Positions 14,553 to 64,000 of a stretch of 64,000 bases of DNA are shown in pieces. Source of the DNA: Macrostomum lignano (Eukaryota). A program made the translations under genes and the position numbers. The DNA lies in contig NIVC01001001.1 in NCBI GenBank assembly GCA_002269645.1, forward strand, positions 62,001 through 126,000. Reading direction: 5' to 3'. Each line of letters begins with the position of its first letter. Within the stretch, counting starts at the first letter, position 1. The notes below the pieces were generated by a model. That model was not told the origin of the DNA, ran no database searches, and was given only the letters and a program-made list of their open reading frames with translations.

Positions 14553-16571
14553 TGTTACGTTCCCTTTTTTACAACTTTGGTTTGGTCCACTAATAATATA
14601 ATATACTATTCTAATAATAAAAAGTGCACTATATTTTTGGCTTTAGCCTTGGAAAATGTGAACTCATGTTTTTTTTACTGTTTGCACTTATTTGGATCAT
14701 ATTAAAATGCTTCAGGCTACCCTTGACTGTTGTAGTCTTTGTAATCAAGGATTATTGAAGTAGGTGTTTATTACAGATATAGTACATTTCTATGTTACTC
14801 GTATTTTAACAATAAATTTCAACATTAACATGTATATTAAAATAGCGTTAACGCGATAATTGTGCTCTACATAGGATCCGCAAAATAATTAGATTTCAAT
14901 CAGTAGCTTCTTCGGCAGTTTCTGAAACGAAATCCACCCAGGAAACAGCCTAACGGCTGGCGGGTTCTTCGGCAGTTTCTGAAACGAAATCCACCCAGGA
15001 AACATCCAAGTGTTTGGTGGGTTATTTGGCGGATTCCGCACATTTTATGCGTTACATCCAGCCGATTGTCGGCAGTTTTCTCTACACTACAGAGGTAGGC
15101 CTTCTTTGGCTGGTTTTGCAGTAAAATTCCCGCCTAAAAAAACGCCATATTTTGCAGAGGGCCTCCTCCGGATTGCGCAATTCTCCCATTTCTCATGTCA
15201 CCATGCCGTTCTCATGATTCTCATCATGACTCATTCTGACGTCATCTTCCCAGCAGCCAATCAGAGAGAGGGAGTCATGGAAACGACCTTGGAGCGGCGG
15301 CCGCGAGGACTATTTAAGGAAGCGATTTTCGGCGTGAGAACCTCGGATCTTTCTGTTTTTTTACGGGTTTCTCCCGTTCGGACCTTAAGTCTTCCAGTCC
15401 TACTATTGGACTTACTTCGTCTATAAGGCGAACCTCTGCCGGCCCGCGGTCTGATACCGCCAAGTTTCCTCAGCTCCCCTAGCGAGCTCATCTGCCGGCC
15501 CGCGGTCTTTTACCACCCAGCATCCTCAGCATCACCTAAGCTATATCAGCGCATCGCCGCTTCATTGTCTGCCTGTCCGCAGTCCACAGCCGCCGTCGGT
15601 CACTCCATCGCTCTCTCTCTCTCTCTGTGCAGCTGCCGGTGAGTTCCTGTACTAATTTGTGCTTTAATTGCCTTTGCTTATCCAGGGTTTGCCTATTTCC
15701 CATTGCTTGATTAGAGAACTGGGCCAATTGTGTACCGTACTTTGCTGTACGAGCTATTTTACTCAATAGTGAAGCCGCCTAATTGCCTGTTGATTTCGCC
15801 TAAGGGCCTAATTATTAACCATAACTAAACTCCTCATTTTTAACATCTTCACCATCATTTCCCTCATGGCTTGTTGAGCCTTTCTCCCTGGGTGGCAAAG
15901 CATAAGGAAGCTGGGGTAAGCTAATGGCCTCTCCCCGTGCAAAGCCCGCCTGTGTGTGCGTGCTGCGGGTCCGTGTGTGCGTGCAGTAGAGGGAATTAGC
16001 GAGTCTTGGCACAGAATGGCAGCAGGAAGGTTGCAACGTCCTGCTTACGCGTCCCTTAGCCCTGAGCAATCTAAACTATAGCTAGTACATGTTCGCCTCA
16101 CACTACTCTTAGTAACTGAAGCCGCAAGTCCGCCTCGCTCACAGCCACAAAGGATCCCCTGCTGAGAAATCCTCCAGATTGAGCCCAGAGTTCTCGAATA
16201 TGCCCCAAGCAGAGTCCCTGTACTAAGCCTAAATCTCCTGGTAACCAATCCAGGCGGGGCTCTAGCCTCGAGAGGTCTGGTAGTGAGATCTAGGTGCGCC
16301 AGGTCACATTGAGTGTTGGGCGGTGGCAGCTATTCGGTCATACCATGACCGAGTGACCAATTATTGCACCTTGGCTACAGGTGGGGTCCATGTGGGTCCT
16401 TGGCCCTCTGGTCATGAAAGCGCTACCAAAGCTATCAATCATGTGAGCGGGACAGTCTGGTGCTGGAGGTCCGTCAGGTCATTGCCCGGTCATAGGCAGC
16501 CTACGGTCACTGCCCCCTCTGGTCATGCGTTCGCCTCCCCGCGGAGCGGACGGTCATCAAGGGGTGTTACA
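14553..16571 (+). mobile_element. Putative solo LTR, about 2.0 kb
   Basis: Starts TGTTACG and ends GGGGTGTTACA (TG...CA). Flanks TCACA and TCAAA form a 4/5 TSD. It contains a 40-bp direct repeat (14908-14947 and 14965-15004), a CCAAT box near 15257, TATTTAA near 15313, and no convincing coding capacity. Confidence 0.6.
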
Positions 16572-17228
16572 TCAAATTAATAATTAAATCTAATCTGTTA
16601 AATCTATTAAATCTAAATTTAATTATCAATTAGATTTCAAGTTAATATAATTAGCTACAATACGTCTTCCTTTTTATACCTACTTTAGTAGTATTTTACA
16701 TACAAGTATTTACTTATTATTTGTTACTTTCTTACTCGTAAATGGCTTGGATGACCTCTCTGTGTCAGCTGAAAAGATGTACAGTATAAGCAAAGACAGT
16801 AGAGTATTATGAAGTCTGTTTTGAAAAAGTGCCAGTCAGTCAACTCAACGAAATTAAGAGTTAATAAGTTCAGATCTTTTTGTTTTAACACTATCGCATT
16901 TTTCCATTAGCAAAAGCCATTACAGTGCCCAGCAAAACAAAATTACTGTTTCAACCGTCATCTTGTGACGACTAAAGAACGAAGTTCTAATAGTTAATTC
17001 ACTAAATTATTGTCAAGCCCGAGCAAATTCATTACATGTGGGTATACTCGTACATGTATATCCTCTCAACAGAATTGTTATGTTTATGGTAAATTTGTAA
17101 ACTTATTGTCATATCGACCATCAATCGCAATACGCATACATGTAAATTTATGTGCTGTGACTAGAAAAGTTCGGTAAAACACTCAGCACTCAAAGCAGCT
17201 TACCGGAATTAGAGAATTTGATCGCCAC

Positions 17229-19196
17229 ATGGAGACAATGCCAGCAGCTTTTCTGTACTTAGTAACGACGTATTTTGCCCAGCAACTATGTGTCGCCGTA
17301 CCACAGCCAGAGTTTCAAAGAGACAGCAACCGAACCAGCAACTTTCTGGCGAGCGACGAAGTGTGGGTGCCCGGAACTACTACCCTGGTTACTATGCGAA
17401 TGGTTGGAGAGCCGCTGGACATTGCAGTTCGATTGCTCAATGGTCCCGCTTCGTTTGGACAGCCTAAACTCTACCTAATGGTGAAATGTTCGCAGTCGGA
17501 CAGTTTCGTTACAGCGGAGCTGTTTACCGGATTTACTGAGCCCATTTCTGCTACGGGTGAGAATAACAACAAACTGGGGCGCGTGTTCTGTAAGCACAGG
17601 CAGCCATTCTCTGTTCAGCCAGTACAAAGTCGGAGCAACCAGTTCAGGCTGAAGCTGATTGACAACGCCGGGAGAGTTCCGTTTAAGGAATCGCTCGACT
17701 TGTCAGCAGAGATAGCTGTACGGGCCGCGTACAACAGACTCGAGCTGACTTCGAGTAGTCTACTCATCTACAACTGGGACTCTCTACTCAGCTTTAAAGT
17801 CCAGCCCGCCCAGCATCCTGGTGCTGCATCGCAATCTGTGGACCGCGTGCTCTCAGAGGAGGGCAAATCTTATCTGTTTTCTCTCTTTTATGAAGTCCAG
17901 CAACCTTTTTTGCAAAAGGTGAATTTCTTAAAGCAAAGTTTCATTAAATTAGTGAATAACGCGTCTCTTGTAATGCGCAGGCATTTGACAGTCTCGATAA
18001 TAGTTCGCTTTGACGAAAAATCCTGCTCAGAGCCAGTAGAGACCAGCTCGGCAATCGTTATTTCATCTGGCGATCCAACATTGAGAAATGAATCCTATTA
18101 CAAGCGATCTGACTTCTTCCAGCCTTGTTGTGTCTTAAATTTGCAAACAGGTGCTTTAGAAGTAAACGAAGTACTTCTTGGTAATTTATTCTGGCAAGTG
18201 ATTAGAAGACGGAAAAGTATTTATTCAGCCGTATTTTTCTGCCTTGCGATATCTTCAAGCAATAAAGCGATGCGATATCATTCATCTTTAACCCTCAAAA
18301 AGGCATCAACTAATATTCGTCCCCAGTTGATTAACGAATATCGCAACGATTCTGGCTCTGAAAACGGGAAAACTAAGCAGACCCCCGCTCGTGTTTATCC
18401 AAGCCAGAGATTCGAAAATGAGTATACTTCTGTCTACCCAAGCTGGTTTATAGGGACGGCAGAAAAATATTTCAAAATTTCAATTGCTCTCGATGATGTT
18501 CGGCGGCAAAAATATAGAAATAGCGTGGATAGCATGGAAGTGCAGCTCATTTCTGGAATGATTGACGTCCTCATAAAAACGCCAATCACGTGCTTCAAAA
18601 GTAGCAAGGCCTATCGCGTGTTCCACAATGGCACGGTGTGCGCTGGTCAGGTGGGAGGCGACGGCTTTCGAAACTGCAGTCAGTACTCAGTTAGCAAGTT
18701 TTACTCAGCTATCCGGTTTGATGGCATGCTTAGCACTAAACATGCTGGAGTTTACACATTCGCTACAGAGGACACAGTGTTCAAGTTCATAGTGACAGTG
18801 ATAAGCCTACCTTTGTTCCGCACCGATGCTCAGTCTGGAGATCTCCAAGCGGAATCGATGGTCACCGAGCTCGTCCAGCTGTTTAACCTGAGCTGCACTG
18901 CGTTTTACTCCAGCGTGTCACCTGTCAGTCTGAGGCCGTCATTTTTAGTCAATGTTGACTTTAATCTGGTAAAGATGGCTGTCCACGAGTTCACTCAGTA
19001 CTTGGGTACGGCTCCTCAGAAGCTAGAGGTGAAACGTAGCGACGACAACAACAGCAGCAGCAGGCTGCAGCTGTACTTGCCTTACGTGGAGAAGCCAAGA
19101 GTAGAGGCCAATGCGTTTGTAGTCCGTTGCCGGGCCTCACTAACGGCTGCAGTTACAAAAGAGCTTCTTGGCACGTCAGTGGAGTACTCAACTTAA
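17229..19196 (+). CDS. Single-exon secreted/surface protein with an Ig-like module, paralog 1 (premature TAA before a hydrophobic tail)
   Basis: 655-aa ORF with a hydrophobic N-terminal signal-like peptide, several N-glycosylation sequons and an Ig F/G-strand-like KHAGVYTF...FIVTVI motif. It is homologous to 24263-26284. The frame stays open past the TAA to TGA at 19346, ending in AVLLTTALLLATVAQYFN. Confidence 0.8.
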   Translation: METMPAAFLYLVTTYFAQQLCVAVPQPEFQRDSNRTSNFLASDEVWVPGTTTLVTMRMVGEPLDIAVRLLNGPASFGQPKLYLMVKCSQSDSFVTAELFTGFTEPISATGENNNKLGRVFCKHRQPFSVQPVQSRSNQFRLKLIDNAGRVPFKESLDLSAEIAVRAAYNRLELTSSSLLIYNWDSLLSFKVQPAQHPGAASQSVDRVLSEEGKSYLFSLFYEVQQPFLQKVNFLKQSFIKLVNNASLVMRRHLTVSIIVRFDEKSCSEPVETSSAIVISSGDPTLRNESYYKRSDFFQPCCVLNLQTGALEVNEVLLGNLFWQVIRRRKSIYSAVFFCLAISSSNKAMRYHSSLTLKKASTNIRPQLINEYRNDSGSENGKTKQTPARVYPSQRFENEYTSVYPSWFIGTAEKYFKISIALDDVRRQKYRNSVDSMEVQLISGMIDVLIKTPITCFKSSKAYRVFHNGTVCAGQVGGDGFRNCSQYSVSKFYSAIRFDGMLSTKHAGVYTFATEDTVFKFIVTVISLPLFRTDAQSGDLQAESMVTELVQLFNLSCTAFYSSVSPVSLRPSFLVNVDFNLVKMAVHEFTQYLGTAPQKLEVKRSDDNNSSSRLQLYLPYVEKPRVEANAFVVRCRASLTAAVTKELLGTSVEYST

Positions 19197-19713
19197 ACTC
19201 GTGGCATTGTCCGCTTCACGCATTCTGATGAAGATTGGACTTTTGGGAACTTATTGGCAAAACTCTTCTCACCGAGACTTTGCTGCGATGCTGTGCTACT
19301 CACAACAGCTCTGTTACTAGCTACTGTTGCCCAGTATTTTAATTGAACGATTGCCCTCGTTAAACTAGGGTGGAAACTTCACATAGTAAATAATGGCACT
19401 ACTCGATGCATTCAAAACATATAACATTTAAATGGTAGGGTTGGATTGGGTGGTAGGATTGTAACATTGTTACAGATGAGATATTGCATTTCGCTACCCA
19501 TTTTGATTTTATTTGCTTTACTTTTTAGGTCCTGCATGATTTTAAAGGTAGATTTTACTTGTAGCTAACTTTATATATACTTTGGTGTCGATTGCTGGTA
19601 ATCGCGTGCATTTATGAAAGCTTCATCATTTTTATTGGCGCCTCTTGTTTTTGGATAAGAATATCGGATACTATATGTGAATTAAATAATCTTATGGCTG
19701 TTTTGATATTTGA

Positions 19714-19839
19714 CCACGAGTTCACTCAGTACTTAGGCGCGGCCCCTCAGAAGCTAGAGGTGAAACGTAGCGACGACAACAACAGCAGCAGCAGGCTGCA
19801 GCTGTACATGCCTTACGTGGAGAACCCTGGCGACAAGGC
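19714..19839 (+). pseudogene. Orphan 126-bp fragment of the surface-protein C-terminal constant block
   Basis: HEFTQYLGAAPQKLEVKRSDDNNSSSRLQLYMPYVENPGDKA. It carries paralog-2-type alleles (YMP, NPGDK) although it sits next to paralog 1. Confidence 0.9.
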
Positions 19840-20323
19840 GACATTTGAGTTAAACAAAAATTATTAAACCATTTATAGCATATTTTTGTCTTTCCAACGT
19901 CTTCAGACCTTCACGGACTCGAAAATAGCAAATCTGCTATTTGAAGATTAGAGAAGTTATATAAAGAACTGCTAAATCAGGCTCGTTCGAGATCGAGCTG
20001 TAGTGTTTAAAACTACATTAGATAAATATCATTGCAGGTAAAACGAACGAATTAGTTTGTATTCTTGTAAATTCCTTGATTCAAAAAATAAAGAATTGAA
20101 AATATTCGATAGACAAATACAAATTGACGGTTTGGACAACTGAAGTGAAAGTCTTTCAATTTTTAGCACTAAAATACCAATATCTCACCTGGATCTACTC
20201 ACAGGTTTATTAAACATTTTTTACGAAATGCTATCGGACAACAGCAAGTAAGCAAAGTTTCAGGCTGAATTTCAGCTGATCCTGTCTTTTAATTGTATTT
20301 TTTAGTTTAATTAAACACTATCA

Positions 20324-20481
20324 GAGGAGTTCTAGCCTAGTGGTTAGGTTAGAGCGTCGGACTCACGACTGGAAGGTTGGGGGTTCGATTCTCGACCCAC
20401 TCAGGACAATGTGTGTCCTTGAGCAAGACACTTAACTCTGCATTGCTTCAATTCACGCGCTGTAAAATGGGTGCCAGCATT
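20324..20481 (+). mobile_element. tRNA-derived SINE family B (CORE-like central domain), 3'-truncated
   Basis: Head TAGCCTAGTGG...GGTTCGATTC, then GTGTCCTTGAGCAAGACACTTAACTC...CTGTAAAATGGG resembling the MIR/CORE domain. Homologous to 30101-30355 and 36508-36804. Confidence 0.8.
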
Positions 20482-22129
20482 CCGCTCACCTTCACCCAGT
20501 TCCGCCAACTTGACTAGGTTAAGTGCAACAAGCCTTCTCCATCGCTAGACAATATCATCCTGCCACAGGTCAGAAGGAACGTGCTCGATCAAAGTCAGTG
20601 TGAAGTCAACGAGTCATCTCATCAAGCAAGCAAGAAAACCAAGTTTCAACGTGTTACGCTCGTATAACATCATCGAAACCGGAAGCCCAACGTAATGTAC
20701 ATGGGCAGCCCTGCATAAAAGCAGATGCTCAAACACAAGTGACACCGGAGGACCTGGACGGTTGGCGATCAGTGGCCTCCGGAACCACGGACCCCGAAGG
20801 GGGAGTCATTCGACTCCCACAAAGGGAATGGCCAGGGGGCGACTGTGCGCCTGCACGTGCAACAACGTCTTCCTGGCCAACGCTCCAGACGCACCGCCTG
20901 TTCGTCTGGCGCAAACCCAACAGGGCGCCCCTGGAAACAGATGATTTACTACAAATGCTAATTAACTAAATGACACTATTTGAAAATTCACATTTTACTA
21001 TCAATTATTATACTGATTAATGGCCACACTTAATTTCTAATCCCCTATCTTCAATACTATTTTATACTATTTCATTTCAGACCCAGGAGAATAATCCTCG
21101 TTGCACAAGGATTTCAAAAAAGGGGGAATAACATAGGGATTATAATTAGGAAAAGTCTGATAAAGTAAAAAGATACGACTCACCGAGGGACGCACGGGTG
21201 GTCTGACGTGCGAATCGACTCGAATAATGAGCCCTGAACTGACCTTTAACCATCGTCTGATGCGACCAACTAACAGATATTAAATTACCTCTCTCGCCCC
21301 GTAGCAACGTGCTAATCTAATGTTGCTGCGTCTGTTGCTAATCAGCGGCGGGGGATGACGTGTATCTAAAACTCTATAAAATAGACACGGCCTCGGCCCC
21401 TAAATGGGCGCTCTAAAAAGACTTTAAGTGATAGTTAGAACTCCTGTGCAGTTCATTCAAACCCAGCGACTTATATTTGTCCTTTGTGCTAAAGGCACAA
21501 TTTGTAGCCAACCGGTTGATGATCTCGGTTGTAAGATCTTTTAGGCTTAGGAATTAGTTAGAACGGAAGCACATAAGAGACCAACTTGGCTAAAAGTCAG
21601 TAAGGCCTAAAAGAAGACTTACAGTTACGTCAATTCTTTTTTTTCTTCACTTGTCATTTGTCAAATTATTATGATTTTTACAAAATGTTACAATACAGAA
21701 CAGCCACATTCAAAGCCACACAGTCACTTCCACTGCATCATGTCATCAATTTTCAGTTCAAGGGGAAACGTCGGAAGAGAAGTTCCGGGGGGGGAAACGA
21801 CCGTAAGCCGGGGCATTCCCAGATCACGTGCTCCGCATTTTCAACACCAGAGAGGCGTTAAATCGGATGACTTCTCAGAACAAAAGAATAAGGGAAAAAG
21901 TCGGATTCTTCAAAGTATTTTCTTGCCTTCAGCACTTCCGCGGTCTCGCGTAGGAACACAAAACTTATCAAAAAAACTTACCAAAGAACTTACCAAAAAA
22001 TATTTATCGAAGGTGGGGTTGGGTTAGCGGAGAGAGAGGGGGGTTGGCTCATGTACATTAAATGAAGAAAAAATGCATGTACAGTTAAATATGTAAACCC
22101 CCAACAATATAGCAAAAATGAACCTTCAG

Positions 22130-22290
22130 AACAAGAGGCAGAATGGGCATTACTCACAGAGGATTTCTTCTTGGAGGTGACGATTCCCTGGAGTTGGCAA
22201 AACAGCCATGTCCCAAGAGGGCCATGGTCACCGCCCTGATGTCCCTGCGGTTGAGTCCAAGCAGGTGTAGAGTGTTCTACTTCCCGTAAA
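22130..22290 (-). mobile_element. Non-LTR retrotransposon fragment, post-RNase H region (continuation of 23340-23870)
   Basis: Translates LHLLGLNRRDIRAVTMALLGHG followed by a degenerate CPFC. It joins the RNase H fragment in frame once the intervening ~1 kb insert is removed. Confidence 0.65.
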
Positions 22291-23337
22291 AGACATAAAA
22301 AGTGTTAATGTACTACTCACACATTTTATTCAGTAGTATACCAAATAGCATGTATAAAGATATGCGCTGAACCAGACATATTTTAATCAACCAATCAAAA
22401 GAGAGAAAAGTCGGACATGCTATTTTTGGCAACCGACCAATCATGCGTGACCTATAATTGTCAAGTTAAACCCCACCTACGATTCGTCATTTGGCTTGCA
22501 CCCGGTTTGCACCCGGATGAACCAATCAAAGTCTACCAGCTACGGTAACCAATCATGCGCTTTTAGAGTAGACTAGTTGCGCAACTTTCTACCCTGTCAT
22601 GCTTGACAGCCACCGAATCGTGACCCTTTGACATTTACGAAAAAGTGATGGACGACCTCGAGAGAGGTTAATTTGCCTATAAATACAAGAGGTCCGGAAT
22701 GGACCCGGAGCCAACAGTTCTCCGAGAGAGAAAGCTCCGAAGAGGAAGCTGCAGCAGACTTCCTGAAGCAACTCGAGACTCGTTCGAGTTCTTGCGGTAA
22801 GCCTTACTCATTTGCGCCCGTTGTTTGAGACGTCTCACTCAAGTCTAGTGTGACTTGAGTTTAGTTGAGTCTGTTGAGACTCTTGAGTCAGTTTAGACTC
22901 CACTGGTTGCAGTCTCCAGAAGGACTGCCCCTGATACATGTAGATCTTAGAAGACTATCAGTGGTTTCCGGAGCTATTCCTAGAGTGCATAGAGGCACTG
23001 CTAGAAGGAGTAGGCTTATATTATCCCGCAGTTTGGCGCAGGGATCCCATTGTTAATTGGAAGCTTACCATTGGTCCGAACGACAGACGCCGGCTGGCAC
23101 AAGACAAAGAAGAAACCCGGACCAGGACTACAGAGTAAAGTCGGACGACAGGCCTGATCGACAGATCTGGGACGAGATCTACGCAAGATCTACAAGGACT
23201 CAGAAGAAGAGATCTACCCATCCGGATTAAAGGTAATTAAATACCTTCAGTTGACTTACTGGGTTGCCTAGCTACAGAGCTAGAAGTGATTGTTCCTTGA
23301 TTACAGTAAAAGGACTGGTAAGAAGGAACACATCACA
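22291..23337 (+). mobile_element. LTR-like promoter-bearing insert splitting the non-LTR element
   Basis: Four ACCAATCA boxes (about 22390-22553) and TATAAATA at about 22678. It ends CATCACA. No clear TSD was found. Confidence 0.5.
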
Positions 23338-23339
23338 GG

Positions 23340-23870
23340 GGCACTGCAGAGCCCGGGAGAAGGACAGGGGACAGCCACGCTGGATTGCCGGCAGTCAGGG
23401 CGTTAACCTACCTCAGCTCCGTGTGCTTAGATGCCACCCAACTGGTTGATCCGAGTGGTGACAATGGCGGTGGGGGTGGGGGCCACTGGCAGGGGACCAG
23501 TGAAAGAACCGGTCAAGCCAGCCTTGGCCAGGCGATCGGCCAATTCGTTGCCAGAGTGGACCCCAGTGCCCAGGGATCCACCTTAGGGACACCTTGTTGG
23601 AGACGCCTAAGCGGTTGAGCTGCGCGATGCAGTCGAGGACTGTACGCGAGCAGGTGCATGGTGATGCGCTCAAGGGCGTGGACCGCCGCTCGACTGTCTG
23701 AGCGAAGAATAATCTCCTTCCCCCAGACGCGCTGATTGTACAGCTCCATGGCACAGGAGCTGATGGCGAGAACTTCGTTCTGGAAGACGGTTGATCAGGT
23801 ACCGGTGTGCTGGGAGAAGGTTGCCACGGTTCACACTCTAGACACAATGCAGTAGCCGGAGCCAGAGGCG
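23340..23870 (-). mobile_element. RNase H domain relic of a non-LTR retrotransposon (R1/LOA/I-type)
   Basis: ILRSDSRAAVHAL and VLDCIAQLNRLGVSNKVSLRWIPGH, in two frames (frameshifted). Confidence 0.8.
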
Positions 23871-24262
23871 GAGTTGATTTATGCCCCACAAAATTCTAAT
23901 TTTTTTACAACTGTATATGTCACAGATCAACTTGGTCCTATTTTATGGAGATACTACGATGGAATTTTTACCGAATTCAACCAGCTCAAAAAATTTCCTT
24001 TTAAACCGAAGAAGTATATGAAGTAGCTAGGTCTGTAGCTCGTGAGAGGTCTTCGGATGATGCAAACGTTAGATTCGTCCCTCAAAGGGCCATAGACCTT
24101 CCAATACGGGCTCTATTAGCTCAAAGTTAAATAGCTAATCGAAAGTGTCTTACTTTGATACCTAGGTCGTGGAAATTTAATTTACGAGTAAAAGAACCCT
24201 AAGTAACGAGTCGGACTTAGCCATACCTTACGGACAAAATCCCAATTTCATTGAGACTAACA

Positions 24263-26284
24263 ATGCTAGCAGCCTTTCAAAGCGTGATTGCAGGGTGCAT
24301 TGTCGGCCAAATACTCGGTGTAGGATCCATTTACCCTACGGAACACAGGCCACAGCCTGAGTTTCAAAGAGACAGCAACCGAACCAGCAACTTTCTGGCG
24401 AGCGACGAAGTGTGGGTGCCCGGAACTACGACCCTGGTTACTATGCGAATGGTTGGAGAGCCACTGGACATTGCAGTTCGATTGCTCAATGGTCCCGCTT
24501 CGTTTGGACAGCCTAAACTCTACCTAATGGTGAAATGTTCGCAGTCGGACAGTTTCGTTACAGCGGAGCTGTTTACCGGATTTACTGAGCCCATTTCTGC
24601 TACGGGTGAGAATAACAACAAACTGGGTCGCGTGTTCTGTAAGCACAGGCAGCCATTCTCTGTTCAGCCAGTACAAAGTCGGAGCAACCAGTTCAGGCTG
24701 AAGCTGATTGACAACGCCGGGAGAGTTCCGTTTGAGGAATCGCTCGACTTGTCAGCAGAGATAGCTGTACGGGCCGCGTACAACAGACTCGAGCTGACTT
24801 CGAGTAGTCTACTCATCTACAACTGGGACTCTCTACTCAGCTTTGATGATGAGGCTGACGACCAGAGTTTTTCCGGAGGGTCAGCTCCAAAGAACCAACA
24901 CCAAATACTTTCCAAGGAAGCCATCGATTATTTATCGTTTCATTTTGACTACCTGCATGGTTCAAAATCCAAGAAAGTTCCATTTTTGCACGACAGGTTT
25001 GCTAAAATGGTGCAAAAATCTTCTCTAGTAGTGCGCAGCAGCTTTGTTTTCTCGGTAATTGTTCGCTATAACAGCAGCTCCTGCTGGGATGTTTGGGCAC
25101 CAAGATCCGATATCGTTGTTTCATCCGGCGATCCGACTTACTCGACTTACATTCAGTCAAATTTGAAACCGTGCTACTATTTGGATTTGCGAACTGGAGT
25201 TTTGGAGGTCAACGGACACTGCATGAACGGCCGAGTGGACAAGGCTGCCAGACTAATCAAGAACGACACGCAAGTTGTGTTGACTTGCTACCGGATATCG
25301 GCAAGTAACAAGGCCTGGCGTTATAACGCATTGAAGCCAGTCAAAGTCAATTACATGGATCTAAGATCTTTTCTTGTTGACATTAGAAGCGGTTTATTTT
25401 TGGAAGTTTTTAATAGTTTTGATAGCTACAAACGATTCGTAAAAAAATGCCATACCAGCTTCGATAAAATTGAAGTACAGCTATTTTCTGGAATGATCGA
25501 CGTCATTTTACAAGTGCCAGTCGTGTGTTCCATAATCCAACGCGTGTTCCACAATGGCACGGTGTGCGCTGGTCAGGTGGGAGGCGACGGCTTTCGAAAC
25601 TGCAGTCAGTACTCAGTTAGCAAGTTTTACTCAGCTATCCGGTTTGATGGCATGCTTAGCACTAAACATGCTGGAGTTTACACATTCGCTACAGAGGACA
25701 CAGTGTTCAAGTTCATAGTGACAGTGATAAGCCTACCTTTGTTCCGCACCGATGCTCAGTCTGGAGATCTCCAAGCGGAATCGATGGTCACCGAGCTGGT
25801 CCAGCTGTTTAACCTGAGCTGCACTGCGTTTTACTCCGGCGTGTCACCTGTCAGTCTGAGGCCGTCATTTTTAGTCAATGTTGACTTTAATCTGGTAAAG
25901 ATGGCTGTCCACGAGTTCACTCAGTACTTGGGTACGGCTCCTCAGAAGTTAGAGGTGAAACGTAGCGACGACAACAACAGCAGCAGCAGGCTGCAGCTGT
26001 ACATGCCTTACGTGGAGAACCCTGGCGACAAGGCCAATGCGTTTGTAGTCCGTTGCCGGGCCTCACTAACGGCTGCAGCTACAAAAAAGCTTCTTGGCAC
26101 GTCAGTGGAGTACTCAACTGAAACTCATGGCATTGTCCGCTTCACGAATCAGGTTCGAAATTTTCGAAACTATATGATGAGCAAAGACGTCTCGTCGGCA
26201 GTGCAAATCGACATTGCGCTGCTTACTACATCCATCTGCTTTTCTATTGTCGTTAGCAGCCTGACTGTAATCGATATGGGATAA
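24263..26284 (+). CDS. Single-exon surface protein with an Ig-like module, paralog 2 (673 aa from ATG 24263; C-terminal hydrophobic TM/GPI-signal-like tail)
   Basis: Uninterrupted ORF with a signal-like N-terminus and the tail IDIALLTTSICFSIVVSSLTVIDMG. Two blocks are near-identical to paralog 1. Confidence 0.82.
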   Translation: MLAAFQSVIAGCIVGQILGVGSIYPTEHRPQPEFQRDSNRTSNFLASDEVWVPGTTTLVTMRMVGEPLDIAVRLLNGPASFGQPKLYLMVKCSQSDSFVTAELFTGFTEPISATGENNNKLGRVFCKHRQPFSVQPVQSRSNQFRLKLIDNAGRVPFEESLDLSAEIAVRAAYNRLELTSSSLLIYNWDSLLSFDDEADDQSFSGGSAPKNQHQILSKEAIDYLSFHFDYLHGSKSKKVPFLHDRFAKMVQKSSLVVRSSFVFSVIVRYNSSSCWDVWAPRSDIVVSSGDPTYSTYIQSNLKPCYYLDLRTGVLEVNGHCMNGRVDKAARLIKNDTQVVLTCYRISASNKAWRYNALKPVKVNYMDLRSFLVDIRSGLFLEVFNSFDSYKRFVKKCHTSFDKIEVQLFSGMIDVILQVPVVCSIIQRVFHNGTVCAGQVGGDGFRNCSQYSVSKFYSAIRFDGMLSTKHAGVYTFATEDTVFKFIVTVISLPLFRTDAQSGDLQAESMVTELVQLFNLSCTAFYSGVSPVSLRPSFLVNVDFNLVKMAVHEFTQYLGTAPQKLEVKRSDDNNSSSRLQLYMPYVENPGDKANAFVVRCRASLTAAATKKLLGTSVEYSTETHGIVRFTNQVRNFRNYMMSKDVSSAVQIDIALLTTSICFSIVVSSLTVIDMG

Positions 26285-26657
26285 TATCTACTGTTCATGG
26301 TTCAATCAGCGTAAACATAATTTACAGATTATTTGCCAGCAGCAAACTGCGCAACATTTCCTTTTGCTTTTATTGCTTCATTACCTGTGCTACTTGTACT
26401 TCGTGTGATTTGGCCATAGCTATTTAGCGTAGTTTATTCTAGCCCGAATCCTAATCTCTCATTATTAGATTTATCCATCTCCTATAGTTGCTGAAAAAAT
26501 TATCACAGAAGTAACCTTCGCGCTCTCCTGAGACAATGATTTTCTAGTTTATACGATATGTATGCCTTGGAAAATATATTCGAGGATTCCTGAGATATAC
26601 ATGTTTTTGCATTGACATTGTTTCATTAAGTGGTCGTAAAACCAGTAAATTGTAACC

Positions 26658-27266
26658 AGCTTGGAATATACTGCTTCAGCAGAAGTCTCCCCTTGTACAG
26701 AATCAGCGTCTCATCGATGGCGACATCCTGCTCTGGTCGATAGGTTTCGCGACAAATTCGGCTAATCAAGTCCAGAAAAGACATTACTTTGCACAGTGGG
26801 TCGTTGATATTGAACTCTCGGCAGTCGTAGCACCGGAAGTAGGCCAGTAGCTGAAGAAATCGCCAACGGGGAAGGCTCTGCTTGCTGAAAGTATGGATTC
26901 CGATACATGACGTCTGTGGACCAGTAGTAGCATATGCTTCTCATCAGCTTCTGGATCCATGCTTTCCGACTCCATTTCTGACTCAAAAACCGTCGAGTCA
27001 TCGCTTGATAAAGCTTCTTCCAAATCGGAATCGAGTCCCAGTCTGCGCAAGGCGTTACTTTTAGCTGTCCTTTTCAGGCGCGTAGAAGCCATTTGTGGGT
27101 AGGAAGCTTTGAATAGGAGCTAGCAGAAAATCTCTGTGGTATACTACTTCTGGGCTTCTAGAGTGTGCATTCAATTCAGCAAGAAAGGCAAATTTGTCTA
27201 TGGACTGCTCTGCAGGCCTTTGGGCTTTTAAGCGATCTTACAGAACCAAGCTTGGGCGCGAAGTGG
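26658..27266 (-). mobile_element. piggyBac transposon relic with an internal deletion
   Basis: Acidic N-terminus (ORF 27092-26784) followed by CRETYRPEQDVAIDETLILYKGRLLLKQYIPS, the piggyBac IDE..YKGR..KQYIP motif. One end reads TTAA|CCACTT on the minus strand (TTAA at 27267-27270); the other end was not found. Confidence 0.75.
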
Positions 27267-30100
27267 TTAATGTGTAGGGGCCTAATGAAAAATCCCCTGC
27301 GCTTCGGCCCTTGGAAGGGCTCTTGCGCAACTTTTTCTTTAAAGTCGAATAGTTGATTATTGACGTGTTTGATAGTCCCATCTTCAACTGCTCGACACTT
27401 ATTAGGAAACTCCCAACTCTCGACCTTTCCCTAACATTAACAATCCCCAAGCTAAAACTACTGGTAGTAGTGTAAAAGCATATCTGCCCTACTACACTTG
27501 CAATAAAAATAAAAAAGAATTAAACTCTAACAAACCTCCAGTTGTAGTGAGTTCGATTGTTGTACTTAAGAGCACAGACTCAGTTAAATACTCTATTAAA
27601 TGAGCTGAGCTGTCTCGGGCGTGAAGCAGACGCGCTGGTTGTCTTTCAGATAAACGGCCAGCCTGATGACAGCCGGATACCGACTGTGCACTTCAAAGCC
27701 CAAGATGGTGTTTACCGCCTCCATGGGACCAATGTACCTGCCCAGAAGGTTGTCAAAGGTGAAATTCGCCTTGTGACCGCCGCGCACCTTCGTCACCGAG
27801 AAGCCGCCCATCTCGGTTGATCTGAGATGATAGTGCGGGTAGCCGTCCTCTTGAATCATGGTGACTGCCTGGAACTCTCTCGGATAGCGTTTGCTGCATG
27901 CGCCATTCTCCACGCACGACGCGGCTGGATTCAGCTGCATTCCACTGGGACCATGCAGGAGATTCTCAGCGACCAGCTTGTGCAGGTCCGCGTCGGCAAC
28001 GGGATCCGGGAGTTCTGCACTGATGATGGCGTCATATTGATCCGGCTTCAGCTTGACAGCCAACCAAAGCAGTGCGTGCACGTGGGGGAAGACCTATTTG
28101 AGTGGGATTTGGTTTATAAATGAAAAGTTTATTTATCCAGACATGATCAGCAAATATAACTAATTTTATTTTTCTTCAGGAATAGCTTTTTTAACAGTTT
28201 TATTAATACACATATTTAAGTATGCAATAAATATTGGCATGATAGTAGTTACCTCGAATTTTGGTACTCGAGAGCGTAGACTCGAGCCAGCGTGTCCCCA
28301 AACAGACTCTTCAGACTGTCGAGGAAGGCCTTCTTCTTCAGCTCGAACACCCTGGCGGTGATGTCCGGCCGATCCACGGCAGTTTGGCCAGGCAGCAGCA
28401 GCTCAGCAAGAATCTCAGGCCACTTCGGGTTACACGTCATCGTCAGGAACAGGTCTGGGCGGCCGAAGGCGTGCACATACGCCATGGCATCCTGCTGACG
28501 TTCTAGACGGTACCGAGGGCCACCGATGACGTATCCAGACGTCAGGATGACGTGGTTCCCGATGTCGATCCCGATCGGGTCGATCTCGCTCGGGTTCCCG
28601 TCGTTCGCGTGGAGCGCATCTCGCAATCCGCGCAGGCGCTCTGACAGCAGGTCCTTCTGGTGCAGTCGGATGTAGTTGAGCCTCTCCGACCAGATACTGC
28701 TGGAACAGCCGGCCTCCGTAGTGCAGGCTGTTGAACTGGCCTGGGTGGACCTGGATCATGAAGGCGTAATACTTGATGATAGTGATGCCACGATCCTGCT
28801 TGAGTCCGATGCTCCAGCCGTCCTCCCCAAATGGGAACAGCAGGACTTCCTTCAAGGGATCGTAAGAGCGGTGGGTGTCACAGATGCTCTGGAGGCCTGT
28901 GAATAAAAAATGATCGATGGGCGAATTCCGTCTTTTCTTAATGCAAATACAGCAATTACATCAATTAAACTGAATTCTTGAATCTTCCAATCGACACAAA
29001 AGCAAGAGATGATAAAATGCTTCGTTATTCAAGGGATACATGTGGGATTAGGGATATATAATTGTGCATCTCATTATCATATAAAAAACGGAAAAATCTG
29101 AGTCTTATGGAAAATGATTTAGAAGTTTGTAATAACAAATAAAAATAAATTTAACATAAATTTCGGGTCGCAGAACTCACCACCGCCCCTCAGACGCAAA
29201 ATCATGTCTCGCCGTCGCGTCTGGGCTAGGCTGGTATCGCCAAGGACCGTCAGGATGCCGACTTCACTGCACTCGGGCAAATTGAAGCGCCTGGCATGCT
29301 CCCCAGATGGACGGGCATCCGGGTTGATGACGACCTTGTCACTTTGCAGCTGAGGGTCGTTGCGGAGCAAGTCAACGGCGGACTTGAGGCTGCGCACGTA
29401 GCCGTTGCACGCATGCAGCATGGCTTGCAGCTCTTCCAGCAGACGACCGTTCAGTCCGGTGGCCCACTGCAGCCGGGTTTGAGGCTCCTGGTCCACAAAA
29501 AAGACCTGGCAGAACCTGGCCTCATCCCCCGGATCCGACAACAGGCTGCCGATTCGATTGTGCATCTGGCCATGGAAGATGAAGCTCGGGTTCCAGCCGG
29601 GCTGCTCACGCTGCTTGGCTCCGAGTGACGTCATGTACAACGCATCGTTGTACTTCCTGATGTCCTTCAGGAACTGCGAGCTGTCCGGGTGCTGGCCGCT
29701 TCAGGACATCATCGGGGGGGGGGGTGGGGTCACGGCGGGGCTCTAGGACGGTCTGAGAGTTGGATTAAAGTAAAAATATTTATCACTTTATGACTGTGGC
29801 TTGTCTTTAAATTCCACTTCCTATTAGTAAGTTATTTCTTACTAATTAACTTTCTTAGCAAAAATATTAAAAACATAATCACCTTGTCTCCATGGCAGCA
29901 ATCGCCGGCGAGCTCAGCTTTCCAGCGTAGGGCGCCGCAGTTCGGACGCTGAACATCCATGCGGCCGAGTACATGCGGCTGGTGCGCCAATTCCAGCAGT
30001 CTGGGATGCAGAAATGAATCTAGCAATGCTGTCGTGACTGTTTTTTAGCAAAGAATTGGCATACGCTCGCGTTTTCATTTTTCAAATTTTATCAGATCCA

Positions 30101-30355: not shown

Positions 30356-30552
30356 TATTAGATTCCAGGCTCTGATTAAACAAATAATGAAGTATAGAAT
30401 ATTCACCTGTCTTGGCGACGAGCTGACTGTGTGTGCAGACGGATGTTGCGGTCATCAGCCGGCTCCGCAATGCGAAGCTGATTCTGGCGATGCTGCTGCA
30501 ACGGCAGGTGATGCAGATGGTCAGTCTCCGGATTGTGCTCAATCGACTCCCC

Positions 30553-31214
30553 TCCAGGCGATGTTGGCGCTCGGCCTCGTCCTCTTCCTGGCGGCTCTCG
30601 ATGCTGCGCAACCGGTTCTCCTCAAGGCGATGTTGGCGCTCGGCCTCGTCCTCTGCCTGGCGGCTCTCGATGCTGCGCAACCGGTTCTCCTCAAGGCGAT
30701 GTTGGCGCTCGGCCTCGTCCTCTGCCTGGCGGCTCTCGATGCTGCGCAACCGGTTCTCCTCAAGGCGATGTTGGCGCTCGGCCTCGTCCTCTGCCTGGCG
30801 GCTCTCGATGCTGCGCAACCGGTTCTCCTCAAGGCGATGTTGGCGCTCGGCCTCGTCCTCTGCCTGGCGGCTCTCGATGCTGCGCAACCGGTTCTCCTCA
30901 AGGCGATGTTGGCGCTCGGCCTCGTCCTCTGCCTGGCGGCTCTCGATGCTGCGCAACCGGTTCTCCTCAAGGCGATGTTGGCGCTCGGCCTCGTCCTCTG
31001 CCTGGCGGCTCTCGATGCTGCGCAACCGGTTCTCCTCAAGGCGATGTTGGCGCTCGGCCTCGTCCTCTGCCTGGCGGCTCTCGATGCTGCGCAACCGGTT
31101 CTCCTCAAGGCGATGTTGGCGCTCGGCCTCGTCCTCTGCCTGGCGGCTCTCGATGCTGCGCAACCGGTTCTCCTCAAGGCGATGTTGGCGCTCGGCCTCG
31201 TCCTCTGCCTGACG
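30553..31214 (-). repeat. 69-bp coding tandem repeat (RQAEDEAERQHRLEENRLRSIES), 9 full units plus a partial one, in the Helitron N-terminus
   Basis: Perfect 23-aa units in ORF 30258-31238. Confidence 0.95.
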
Positions 31215-31926
31215 GCGGTATAAGTATAAGTTTCGCAAAAGAATTGCGAAACAAAATGAATGGTATAGGCTATTAGCACAATGCTAATATTGTCATGTGT
31301 TGCGCTACCTTAAATAAATATCTGAATATTTATGTTGATAGAAGAGAAGATCTCTCGTCTTTTCTCTCCTTTTATCTTTTATCTCATCTATCATTTCATC
31401 TCACCTCTGCTATTATCTTCTCTCTAGTCTCTTATTTCATCTCCTCTCTCGCTCCAAGGTCTCAGCTCTCTTCTCTTCTCTCTTTCCCCTTCTCTCTCCT
31501 TTTCTCTTTCATCGGACCCCCCCCCCTAGGATAAAAAGTTTGCATACCTTTTGTCCTAGAGAAACTGGAAAAAATACAATTTGAATGGAGCAGCGTCTCA
31601 TTATTGCGCATACCTTCCGCAAAGTTGAGAGCTGGTTGCCATAGTGACGCCAAAAGTATTGACATTTCAGGCAGCACCTGCTTAATAATGCATCATTTGT
31701 CGACTGGGGCAGCCTACGATTCTGACTATTCTGGCAGTTTGTTTACGGAATCTACCTGAGTTTAATTGGCAGAATGTCTGCAGCGGCGCGCATACATCTG
31801 CCATTGGCTCCGCCAATCTTCTTTGGGTGGCTACAAATTCAACTGTCGATTTGCCACAGGGTGGAGCGTCTTTTCCTCCCCAAAAGCTCCTGCCTCTAGC
31901 ACGCTATTGTCAAGCTAGCTGACAAC

Positions 31927-33199: not shown

Positions 33200-34440
33200 A
33201 TAGTAATAATATAATAATATACCGCCCGCGCTGACCACACAAGTGATCAAAAAAGGGTTGCGTCAAATCGCGCGCTTCAGGGCAAGGTCTCTGACGTGCT
33301 TCACGCCGGCTGACTGGCTGGGCGCTCGCGCATCATCGATAAGACAGTCGATGCTCTTCCCTATCCGCGTCTGCGAGGTCCCTGCGGAGTCCACAGCAGG
33401 ACGTCCTGCAGCGGCTCTAGGCAATAGGCTTCGGCCCCAATGATATGCCCGGCAAGCCGCAGACGTCGCTTGCTCAGCAGGACAGAAGGCCGCGTCAGGC
33501 GCGCTCGCTGGTATAGGAAGTCTGTCGTCTTGCTGCCGGGGCCGCGGCGGGCGCCGAAGCGGCACGAACCAGCTGCCTCTCGAGCGCCTCGGTCAGCGTC
33601 CAGGTTTCAGCATTGTACAGGAGGGCGGTCTCGAACACAGCCTGGAACAGCTGGGACCTGGCGCTGTCCGACAGGGCCTCCGAAAGCAGCACCGCCCGAA
33701 CAGATCGGAAGGCGGCCCAAGCCTTGCCGCGCCGTCTCGCCAGGTCGTCGCTCACGTCCGGCAGCAGCCCGCCGAGGTAAAGGAACTGACGACACTTCGG
33801 GAGCACCGTCAAAGGGCCATCGCCGTCTCTGAGTCGAATCTTGGCGGGTGGATCGTGAGGCACCGTCAGCACCTCGGTCTTTTTGGCGTTGATGACTATG
33901 CCGACCCTCGCAGCTCCGCAGTCAGGCCATCCAGCAGCCGTTGGGCGCCTTCTTCTCCGGGTGTCGCCGACTGGTGCGCCTTTGCAGTAGAAAGCTGTCC
34001 TCTGCGGTCGGCAGGCCGGTCCTGCGCACCCAGTCCGTCAGCAAAACAAAGAGGAAAGGCGCCAGAGTGTCACCCTGCAGGACTCCGGAGGTCGTGCTGA
34101 ACAGGTCCGACGGTCCGTCTGGCGTCGCTACCACAACGGTGGTGTCCTGGTACAGCGCCATGATGGCGGAGATCAGCTGCTGCGGTACGTTGTAGGCACG
34201 GAGCACGTGAGGCAGCTCATCGTGGGCCACCGAGTCGAAAGCCTTGAGGAAGTCAACAAAGATGACAACTAGGCTTGACTGGTGGATGTGCGCTTCTCGA
34301 TGATGCAGCGGGGGGCCAGGATCTGCGTCACTGTGCCACGACGAGGCCGGAACCCGTTCTGCTCGTACCGCAGGTACGGGTCCAGCACCTGCTGTAACCA
34401 TGCTAACAGCACCCGGTTGAACAGCTTCACAGCACAGGAC
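33200..34440 (-). mobile_element. 5'-truncated RTE-like non-LTR retrotransposon (RT relic, YADD region deleted)
   Basis: EQNGFRPRRGT, FVDFLKAFDSV, GVLQGDTLAPFLF, INAKKTEVL, FLYLG, KAWAAF and LLYNAETWTL, with a (TTA)-like tail near 33200. Confidence 0.88.
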
Positions 34441-34559
34441 ATCAGCTTCATTCATTCACAGCTTCATTCACAGCTCTTCTGTATAAGTACGGAGACGGAG
34501 TACGGAGAGTGAGACATCGAGAGAGGCTACTTAAAAGCCTTCAGTACAAGCGACTTTTT

Positions 34560-35000: not shown

Positions 35001-35508
35001 ACAGTAGGCAGATAATCCGGTGGCGCCTATCTCCTCTCCAGATGTGAATGGCCGCTGGCTTGAAAGCTCATCAGCCCTTTGAAAGGTCTGCTTTTATTCC
35101 TGCTGGGTGTTCCCACGCACTCTCCTCACCCAGGTTTCCCCAGGTGGAGGAGCCGGTTTAATTGCCGACTGCCTGACCATGAAACAGGCGGTACTGGTTT
35201 ACATGTTACCAGTTGACTGAGAAGAGAAGAGACCGCATGCAATTTTTATACGAGCTGACAATTCAAATTATTTTTCGAAAATTCACAAAACAGGGCGAGT
35301 TACTATGATTAAAAATGAAGAAAATACTCGCGCAGATGAGAGAGGCTACAATTGCGGAAGTTTGAAGTCAGTCTGTTCCATAGACAAACTTGTAGCTTCC
35401 GTTAGCAACTTACTCCGAATTAGGTTTATTGGGATTTTGTGTTCCACTAGCAATTCTATGTTGATTCGCGGCGGTAGTTTTTGCTGAGGAATTTCAAGGT
35501 TGTCAACA

Positions 35509-39814: not shown

Positions 39815-40841
39815 AATTGCCCGCCGAGATTTCTCCAACGAGATAATTGCCCGCAGGAGATTCGCCCGCAATGCTTTTTCCTGCAGTGCACTTTTCTACA
39901 CAGCAGATTTGGTCTGCATTGCCTCCCCGATGCTTATAGTAAGTCTTAATAAAAGATTTACCCGATCCAAAACGTTTCGATGGTAACTGTATATCAAATG
40001 CATATTCTACTTAAGGTATATACACACGCTCGTACAGGAGTACATCTGTGAGCTACATGCATGTACATCTGTGAGCTACATGCATGTACATCTGTGAGCT
40101 ACATGCATGTACATCTGTGAGCTACATGCATGTACATCTGTGAGCTACATGCATGTACATCTGTGAGCTACATGCATGTACATCTGTGAGCTACATGCAT
40201 GTACATCTGTGAGCTACATGCATGTACATCTGTGAGCTACATGCATGTACATCTGTGAGCTACATGCATGTACATCTGTGAGCTACATGCATGTACATCT
40301 GTGAGCTACATGCATGTACATCTGTGAGCTACATGCATGTACATCTGTGAGCTACATGCATGTACATCTGTGAGCTACATGCATGTACATCTGTGAGCTA
40401 CATGCATGTACATCTGTAAGCTACATGCATGTACATCTGTGAGCTACATGCATGTACATCTGTGAGCTACATGCATGTACATCTGTGAGCTACATGCATG
40501 TACATCTGTGAGCTACATGCATGTACATCTGTGAGCTACATGCATGTACATCTGTAAGCTACATGCATGTACATCTGTGAGCTACATGCATGTACATCTG
40601 TGAGCTACATGCATGTACATCTGTGAGCTACATGCATGTACATCTGTGAGCTACATGCATGTACATCTGTGAGCTACATGCATGTACATCTGTGAGCTAC
40701 ATGCATGTACATCTGTGAGCTACATGCATGTACATCTGTGAGCTACATGCATGTACATCTGTGAGCTACATGCATGTACATCTGTGCTAAATGCGCTGCA
40801 AGAAAAAAGCATTGCGGGCAAATCTCGGCGGGAAAATCTCG
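39815..40841. mobile_element. MITE-like element with ~50-bp imperfect inverted arms enclosing a satellite
   Basis: 39839-39890 is roughly the reverse complement of 40792-40841 (motif GAGATTTGCCCGCAATGCTTTTT..CTGCAG). Confidence 0.6.
40040..40786. repeat. 23-bp minisatellite (GTACATCTGTGAGCTACATGCAT), about 32 units
   Basis: Nearly perfect array. Each junction forms the 12-bp palindrome TACATGCATGTA. Confidence 0.97.
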
Positions 40842-63630: not shown

Positions 63631-64000
63631 ATTGCTAATCTATTGCGTGTCAGAATCATAACTTACCGCTGACATCTCAAGCGCAGATAAATCAAATATA
63701 TATTGTAAAACAAGTTTTTATTGACAAAAATACGTTGCAAATTTTTCTGACTGAAGCCTTTGATATTTTAGAGTTAGATAAGCTAATAAATCACTGCTTG
63801 TCAAGAGCAACCTGTTCTATGCAGCTGGCAGTTACAGGCTGAATTATTGATTAACAATGCTGCTCATAAATCTTAATCACGGAGACCAGCCTTTTTCTTG
63901 TCCTGAACGGGTGCCAGATTTATTCAATTCAAAGCATCTGGGACTTGGATGCATTTCTGCGAAGAAAGATGTTTTTTCTGTTAGATAATTAAATCTCTAA

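Follow-up and report, generated by a model that had tools for sequence, protein, structure and literature searches.

We analysed a window of 64,000 nucleotides (the whole stretch of DNA considered here) on contig NIVC01001001.1 of the Macrostomum lignano assembly Mlig_3_7 and focused on two tandem genes in it, g1 and g2, whose products are predicted to be immunoglobulin (Ig)-like surface proteins. According to the data presented below, the two genes are, with high probability, old tandem duplicates in which two blocks have been homogenised by ongoing, regional and GC-biased gene conversion. Both genes lie on the same strand, 7 kb apart, and each is laid out as a signal peptide, a constant N block, a divergent core, a constant C block and a hydrophobic tail (Table 1). 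That segmental gene conversion shapes this layout had been proposed in the original prediction, a reading of the DNA letters without database searches, and is borne out by contrasts in silent-site divergence, by the GC content at third codon positions (GC3) and by private conversion tracts.

Re-running the alignments reproduced the coordinates, lengths, mismatch counts and motifs first reported for the pair, and likewise bore out that the genes are paired and intronless, encode secreted or surface glycoproteins and follow a constant-variable-constant layout. When the window was compared with itself, the N blocks (495 bp) differed at 5 positions by blastn and the C blocks (606 bp) at 15 positions by megablast, with weaker similarity beyond the C block reaching 18522/25457 and 19223/26149. 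Small islands of old divergence are retained within the g1 C block, at 19092–19106 and 19161–19163. The cores are in frame and measure 819 bp in g1 and 696 bp in g2, the former carrying a 39-residue insertion relative to the latter; in 30-codon windows they share 41–63% of their nucleotides and ~19–48% of their residues, and the motif pairs first quoted are recognisable in both (among them IVISSGDPT/IVVSSGDPT, ISSSNKAMRY/ISASNKAWRY and EVQLISGMIDV/EVQLFSGMIDV). Identity between the two products, which amounts to 67% overall, is restricted to the two blocks. Each protein carries 8–9 N-glycosylation sequons, and for g2 the ATG at 24263 is a more likely start than the upstream TTG.

Segment by segment, Nei-Gojobori estimates of synonymous (dS) and non-synonymous (dN) divergence between g1 and g2 separate the blocks from everything that surrounds them. 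In the N block dS is 0–0.035 and dN 0–0.005, and in the C block dS is 0.015–0.05 and dN 0.02–0.05. The core, lying between them, has a saturated dS of 2.6–3.1 (dN 0.60), the signal peptide a dS of 1.6 (dN 0.65–0.71) and the tail a dS of 0.6–0.7 (dN 0.50–0.61). Because near-zero silent divergence adjoins saturated silent divergence within the same genes, the blocks have been homogenised and do not owe their identity to selection on the protein. The signal peptides and C-terminal tails, which had been described as unrelated, are instead diverged homologues, since 'DAVLLTTALLLATVA' can be aligned with 'DIALLTTSICFSIVV', the tails have the measurable dS just given, and reading through the g1 stop codon yields a hydrophobic tail.

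The same two-gene locus is present on two further contigs, NIVC01000068.1 (L001) and NIVC01002153.1 (L007), which are 97–98.6% identical to the window; the window's own locus (L006) corresponds to positions 7229–36284 at 100% identity. In all three copies the pair is flanked by a ceramide-kinase gene on one side and a UFD1 gene on the other, and all three carry the mosaic, each with its own single-nucleotide polymorphisms (SNPs) and indels. The genome of line DV1 comprises three paralogous subgenomic copies that are ~2.2% diverged overall and 1.1% diverged in coding sequence (PMC10733133). Divergence between the copies is uneven along the locus, being 3–4% at 15300–16500 and 0–1% over the stretch that takes in promoter, N block and core of g1 (16500–18300), and the window and L007 are nearly identical from about 26400 to 29400.

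A table of variable sites over six sequences, g1 and g2 in each of the three copies, reveals how the blocks have exchanged sequence. Within the 33-bp tract 18948–18980, the window g1 encodes NVDFNLVKMA, like every g2, and the g1 genes of L001 and L007 encode KAAGKLLELS, a difference of 15 nucleotides. A second small g2-type patch lies at 19110–19115 of the window g1, the stretch 19092–19106 between the patches having remained g1-type, and owing to these tracts the orthologous g1 copies, otherwise nearly identical, reach a peak of 20 differences per 300 bp at 18900–19200. At sites 18870 and 18912, the window g1 equals the L001 g2 and the L001 g1 equals the window g2. Moreover, in the N block the g2 genes of L001 and L007 equal g1 at four silent sites at which the window g2 differs. 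The private tract, the cross-paralog markers and the reset g2 N blocks therefore record conversion events that took place after the copies had split. All detected exchange is confined to the constant blocks and never involves the cores. Downstream of g1 lies a piece of ~124 bp of g2-type C-block sequence that has no counterpart at the corresponding site of L001 or L007 and therefore looks like a templated ectopic insertion. Its junctions are flanked by 2-bp matches (CC and GC), which resembles templated repair, and the piece appears to be a further footprint of such repair at this locus.

Base composition points in the same direction. GC3 amounts to 0.58 in the N block and 0.59–0.60 in the C block of this first pair, compared with 0.42–0.47 in the core, and higher GC3 in the blocks is the expected trace of long-running GC-biased conversion; raised GC3 has also served as a conversion criterion for the clustered protocadherins of fugu (PMC1852091). 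The silent-site contrast, tract-like discordance and raised GC3 that characterise regional interlocus conversion are hence all found at the locus.

The same arrangement recurs at a second tandem pair, P0004 (PAA81941.1) and P0008 (PAA81940.1) on NIVC01000506.1, whose products are ~30% identical to those of g1 and g2. This pair displays the same five-part mosaic at homologous boundaries, with different signal peptides and tails: its N block (447 bp) is 98% and its C block (713 bp) 99.2% identical (range 98–99.3%), and the cores share ~37% protein identity. Its GC3 reaches 0.79–0.81 in the blocks vs 0.49–0.56 in the cores. The pair is found on a second contig (L004) too, where the downstream P0008-like copy (16875–18847) is frameshifted near 18434 and unannotated; the spacing of the two genes is 4.6 kb in L004 vs 9.2 kb in L002/L003. 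Within the C block, 6 and 4 mismatches separate paralogs that share a contig, fewer than the 8 and 12 found between paralogs on different contigs. Between the two loci the blocks are ~30% and the cores 14–20% identical, and the core is the fastest-evolving part of the family generally. In neighbour-joining trees built from the cores, g1 pairs with g2, and P0004 pairs with P0008, both at 100% bootstrap support, and because the core trees group by locus, the central region escaped homogenisation independently at the two loci. An ancestral pair of two gene types that was later duplicated to a second locus was rejected on the same grounds. In both pairs, however, it is the upstream gene that has an insertion, placed at the same point of the core, which may reflect an earlier conversion of the cores.

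At the protein level, structure prediction supports, as far as the fold goes, the Ig-like surface protein that had been anticipated, with the fold assigned by Foldseek on an AlphaFold2 (AF2) model; a distant paralog has a Bravo_FIGEY tail. A single-sequence AlphaFold run gave a predicted local distance difference test score (pLDDT) of 31; AF2 run with an 18-sequence family alignment gave a mostly beta model with a pLDDT of 62.8 and a predicted template-modelling (TM) score of 0.69. Low-confidence linkers in this model lie at residues 195–212, 376–395 and 496–514, the first two of which coincide with the block borders. Since linkers and borders match, the N block would form one module, the core the central module or modules and the C block the last two. 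Helices are predicted in the central module. In a Foldseek search of the Protein Data Bank (PDB), the Ig domains of neurofascin-155 ranked first (E = 1.5e-10), followed by contactins, DCC, Sidekick, axonin-1 and Dscam Ig1–4, with E values of 1e-10 to 1e-7 overall and TM scores of ~0.5 when normalised to the target. Sequence searches of the PDB, performed with a single protein and with the family profile, gave no match to any chain. The idea that the block borders mark former introns was rejected, given that the ectodomain of the long paralog P0017 (residues 1–676) is a single exon.

The family to which the two genes belong is small. An exhaustive HMMER scan of 1.84 billion representatives returned 6 clusters, all from M. 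lignano and corresponding to ~7 distinct genes, and a homologue search with the family profile returned only the two L001 genes. Its long members, P0006 and P0017, have a strong transmembrane helix followed by a tail of 69–96 residues with a Bravo_FIGEY cytoplasmic domain (E = 2.7e-16); the P0006 tail includes 'SFIGGY'. A weak Ig_2 match in P0005 (E = 6e-4) falls below the cut-off, and none of the family members gave a fibronectin type III (FnIII) match in Pfam. The short members (g1, g2, P0002, P0004 and P0008) end 0–3 residues after a moderately hydrophobic tail that has the form of a glycosylphosphatidylinositol (GPI) attachment signal; for the window genes this distance is 1–3 residues, so they are without a cytoplasmic FIGQY region. 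The family resembles a strongly diverged offshoot of the L1-type adhesion molecules that is confined to Macrostomum, but we do not class g1 and g2 as L1 family members because they are without FnIII repeats and FIGQY tail. Both genes are probably transcribed, since the Mlig_3_7 annotation was built from RNA-seq (PMC5730564) and both are called in L001.

Among the alternatives to recurrent conversion, an artefact has to be considered in a genome of this kind. The identical blocks might come from collapse or chimerism in a neopolyploid assembly, or else from purifying selection alone. In favour of such a reading, redundancy of the assembly is high, with 93% of read pairs mapping to more than one locus (PMC10733133), and the gene annotation at the locus is visibly confused. 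However, the two-gene mosaic stands on three independent contigs and the second locus shows it on two, and selection at the protein level cannot remove synonymous differences; the probability of this reading is negligible. Assembly collapse and chimerism, which the original prediction itself had named as a possible source of the identical blocks, are excluded because all three copies carry the mosaic with SNPs of their own, and chance is likewise excluded. A one-off origin, in which a single recent unequal crossover or double recombination put the same ends on two unrelated middles, would fit the sharp block borders, and the block identity of 97.5–99% would allow for one event that roughly coincided with the genome duplication. 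Yet such an event would leave the same tract content in the three copies, whereas the differences observed need events after the split; the raised GC3 of the blocks requires biased conversion to have acted many times over, the C block retains islands of old divergence, and the second locus would need an identical accident. We thus regard a one-off origin as extremely unlikely.

More consequential for function is the possibility, central to the original prediction, that the genes belong to a diversified polymorphic recognition system, be it for immunity, allorecognition or gametes, with many members or alleles and a hypervariable core swapped as a cassette. In its favour, the constant-variable-constant layout does exist and recurs at the second locus, an Ig-like surface molecule is predicted for each gene, all 5 differences between the g1 cores of the subgenomic copies are non-synonymous, one GenBank model runs from the body of g1 into the end of g2, and ectopic copying is active at the locus. 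What speaks against such a system includes the size of the family and the variability of the core. The few clusters retrieved from the 1.84 billion representatives all belong to one species, and no further cores or cassettes were found in the 64-kb window (two genes and one 124-bp fragment) or at the other fetched family loci, so the expected large family or cassette repertoire was not recovered. The cores are ~99% identical among the three copies: 5 codons differ in g1 (0 synonymous, 5 non-synonymous) and 10 in g2 (4 synonymous, 6 non-synonymous, plus one 9-bp indel). A core divergence of ~1% is no more than the genome-wide 1.1–2.2% (PMC10733133), and the pooled core dN/dS of ~0.75, derived from 11 non-synonymous and 4 synonymous changes within the inbred line DV1, is not significant. 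A hypervariable or polymorphic core is accordingly not what these three copies display. The outcome that the original prediction itself had named as refuting it, only two copies with monomorphic cores, comes close to describing the window locus, read in an inbred line. Exchange was observed in the constant blocks and never in the cores, and the fused gene models disagree, the reading frame being kept in one copy and lost in another, with junctions that lie where any spliced aligner would put one. Selection on silent sites, considered as an explanation for the zero synonymous differences in the g1 core, was rejected because the low-divergence stretch also covers upstream non-coding DNA. Taken together, diversified recognition is not supported by family size or core variability, and we consider it very unlikely.

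Several points weigh against recurrent conversion between Ig-like genes with selectively maintained, different cores. At three marker sites within 18870–19025, the converted window g1 matches the g2 of L001 and not the neighbouring g2, which may point to exchange between homeologous chromosomes or to a later change of the local g2 and complicates a simple conversion in cis. Pfam gave no significant match in the g1 and g2 proteins and no Ig or FnIII match above threshold, and the Ig-like assignment depends on a medium-confidence model from 18 closely clustered sequences. With respect to selection for different cores, a core dN/dS of ~0.75 from 15 changes is based on too few events to show selection, and the long-term core dN/dS is unreadable, dS being saturated. 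Finally, the gene IDs were not found in the supplements of four M. lignano papers or in literature main texts, which yielded neither an expression pattern nor a phenotype, and no paper was found that connects Macrostomum with the family or with gene conversion in these genes.

The closest precedent for the mechanism is the regional gene conversion of teleost clustered protocadherins (Yu et al. 2007, PMC1852091, where Noonan et al. 2004 is cited on these clusters). Like g1 and g2, protocadherins are tandem single-exon ectodomains of adhesion molecules, in which a part that is >99% identical, silent sites included, stands next to a divergent part that tells the genes apart, and GC3 is raised in the homogenised part. 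The Macrostomum locus differs in having two genes, not tens, in having two homogenised blocks that flank a core instead of one 3' block, in its Ig-like, not cadherin, fold, and in having neither a shared constant exon nor alternative promoter choice. The paired receptors Siglec-11/16, Siglec-5/14 and the CEACAM pairs (PMC5701461, PMC4042635, PMC5112662) may offer a further parallel, being likewise neighbouring Ig-superfamily paralogs in which conversion keeps chosen extracellular domains near-identical. Their ligand-binding end is common and the signalling tails differ, which allows different roles; in g1 and g2, by contrast, the ends are common, the middle of the ectodomain differs and neither protein has a cytoplasmic signalling tail. 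With regard to the L1CAM/neurofascin/contactin family, the fold predicted for the window proteins comes closest to the Ig ectodomains of neurofascin-155 and contactin and to Ig1–4 horseshoes, the long paralogs P0006 and P0017 share the Bravo_FIGEY cytoplasmic domain of L1-type proteins, and the occurrence of short members with a GPI-like signal beside long transmembrane members recalls that of contactins beside L1-type proteins. In contrast to that family, g1 and g2 lack Ig or FnIII Pfam matches above threshold, have helices in the predicted central module and belong to a family found only in M. lignano.

The original prediction compared the pair with the Alr molecules of Hydractinia and the variable lymphocyte receptors (VLRs) of lampreys, surface recognition molecules whose divergent segment is framed by conserved sequence and in whose variation gene conversion or copy-choice takes part. 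The predicted surface molecules described here share the conserved frames around a divergent segment but differ in that they have no large cassette reservoir, low diversity among the available cores and no sign of somatic assembly.

The explanation that we favour combines these observations as follows. g1 and g2 are most probably old tandem duplicates. Their family, small and restricted to Macrostomum, would consist of surface glycoproteins of the Ig superfamily that are L1/neurofascin-like but highly diverged, and each of the two comprises a signal peptide, a beta-rich ectodomain of ~600 residues and a short hydrophobic tail of the GPI-signal type. Non-allelic conversion, recurrent, GC-biased and continuing since the recent genome duplication, keeps the first structural module and the last two nearly identical, while the signal peptide, the central module or modules and the anchor signal have escaped conversion and diverged to saturation. 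The segment borders fall on predicted inter-domain linkers, not on introns, and the same partition arose independently at the second tandem pair. We infer that the ends may be more constrained because they serve one function in both proteins, for instance contact with a common partner or scaffold, and that the middle, evolving fastest, may fall below the homology needed for conversion and then diverge freely; because the core is fastest-evolving family-wide, this offers a simple account of the freely diverging middle. Selection may also hold the two middles different, which would provide two binding specificities per locus on a common frame. Carried one step further, this leads to a small-repertoire Macrostomum recognition code, with two GPI-anchored, L1-like Ig-type cell adhesion molecules per locus whose middles are kept different and whose ends are identical. 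We consider such a code improbable; if it were true, the shared ends would fit the same partner or lattice, the arrangement would have evolved in parallel at two or more loci, and the code might extend via g1/g2 chimeric transcripts, with a use in cell-cell, partner or gamete recognition in this hermaphrodite.

In the window copy, g1 has acquired a premature stop codon that is private to this subgenomic copy and truncates the protein before its C-terminal hydrophobic anchor signal. The tail encoded behind the stop contains the hydrophobic stretch AVLLTTALLLATVA three residues from its end, and similarity between g1 and g2 runs on for 24 nucleotides beyond the TAA. In L001 (PAA91928.1, P0020) and L007, g1 is intact at 705 residues; the window g2 is 98% identical to PAA91929.1 (P0001) in L001. 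Judging from the reading frame, the window-copy g1 would have lost its anchor by nonsense mutation and would now give a secreted product or be an early pseudogene.

The public annotation of the locus has to be treated with caution. The GenBank model Mlig007554g1 spans exactly 17229–26284, and switches from g1 to g2 between 18915 and 19076; the sole GT-AG solution, 19028|25955, implies a 6926-nucleotide 'intron' whose ends lie in the shared block. Its counterpart in L007 (PAA60426.1) jumps likewise, but out of frame, even though the g1 of that copy is an intact open reading frame (ORF) of 705 codons. Such fused models are most likely spliced-alignment artefacts in a multi-mapping genome, and because the public models at the locus are g1-g2 fusions, an exact-sequence lookup does not return the window ORFs among protein records. 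In the window copy, splicing at 19028|25955 would bypass the premature g1 stop.

Table 1. Features of the g1/g2 locus and of flanking genes, in window coordinates
Feature	Position	Strand	Remarks
g1	17229-19196	+	One-exon uninterrupted ORF, 655 aa
g1 signal peptide	17229-17300	+	From ORF layout
g1 constant N block	17301-17795	+	Partner 24350-24844; predicted structural module 1
g1 divergent core	17796-18614	+	Partner 24845-25540
g1 constant C block	18615-19220 (ORF part to 19193)	+	Partner 25541-26146; last two predicted beta-sandwich modules
g2-to-g1 conversion tract	18948-18980	+	33 bp, recent, private to window copy
Premature TAA in g1	19194-19196	+	GAA in the other five gene copies (g1 of L001 and L007; every g2)
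g1 tail behind stop	19197-19346	+	49 codons plus original stop codon
g2-type C-block piece, ~124 bp	19716-19839	+	Inserted 520 bp downstream of g1
g2	24251-26284	+	One-exon ORF; 677 aa from TTG, 673 aa from ATG 24263
g2 signal peptide	to 24349	+	From ORF layout
g2 N block	24350-24844	+	Partner of g1 N block
g2 core	24845-25540	+	Partner of g1 core
g2 C block	25541-26146	+	Partner of g1 C block
g2 GPI-signal-like tail	to 26281	+	From hydropathy and end position
Implied 'intron' of Mlig007554g1	19029-25954	+	GenBank model PAA73632.1, 709 aa; fuses g1 body to g2 3' end
Ceramide-kinase C-terminal exon	2262-2846	-	Flanking host gene, syntenic in all three subgenomic copies
UFD1-like exons	35500-37667	+	Flanking host gene, syntenic in all three subgenomic copies
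DHHC palmitoyltransferase exon	59122-59670	+	Flanking host gene

The surrounding DNA is rich in repeats. Broken Helitron-type transposon ORFs lie just 3' of g2 on the minus strand (27596–29640, with a Helitron_like_N match of E = 1.3e-30 at 28249–28626), and degenerate reverse-transcriptase fragments with RVT_1 matches are located at 33922–34455 and 47434–48129. Satellite arrays occupy 52583–59070, 61174–63642, 3054–5147, 40040–40786, 30551–31216 and 1647–2050, with units of 23 bp x 293, 39 bp x 62, 22 bp x 91, 23 bp x 32, 69 bp in frame x 9.7 and (TGAC)x101, respectively. Tandem repeats make up ~20% of the window.

In sum, the mechanism is well supported and of a known kind; what is new is the gene family and its replicated, independently evolved layout of same ends and different middle. 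On present evidence the locus reveals no novel type of immune or allorecognition system, and on the practical side the fusion of two genes in the public models deserves to be flagged. What it offers is an unusually clean, internally replicated case of domain-restricted concerted evolution, seen at two loci, with tracts caught since a recent genome duplication and with replication provided by three subgenomic copies of the window locus and two contigs bearing the second pair. Among L1-like Ig surface proteins, the genes also define an uncharacterised branch that is restricted to one lineage, and as M. lignano permits RNA interference and transgenesis, the question of why the ends are held constant and the middles differ is directly testable in the animal itself.

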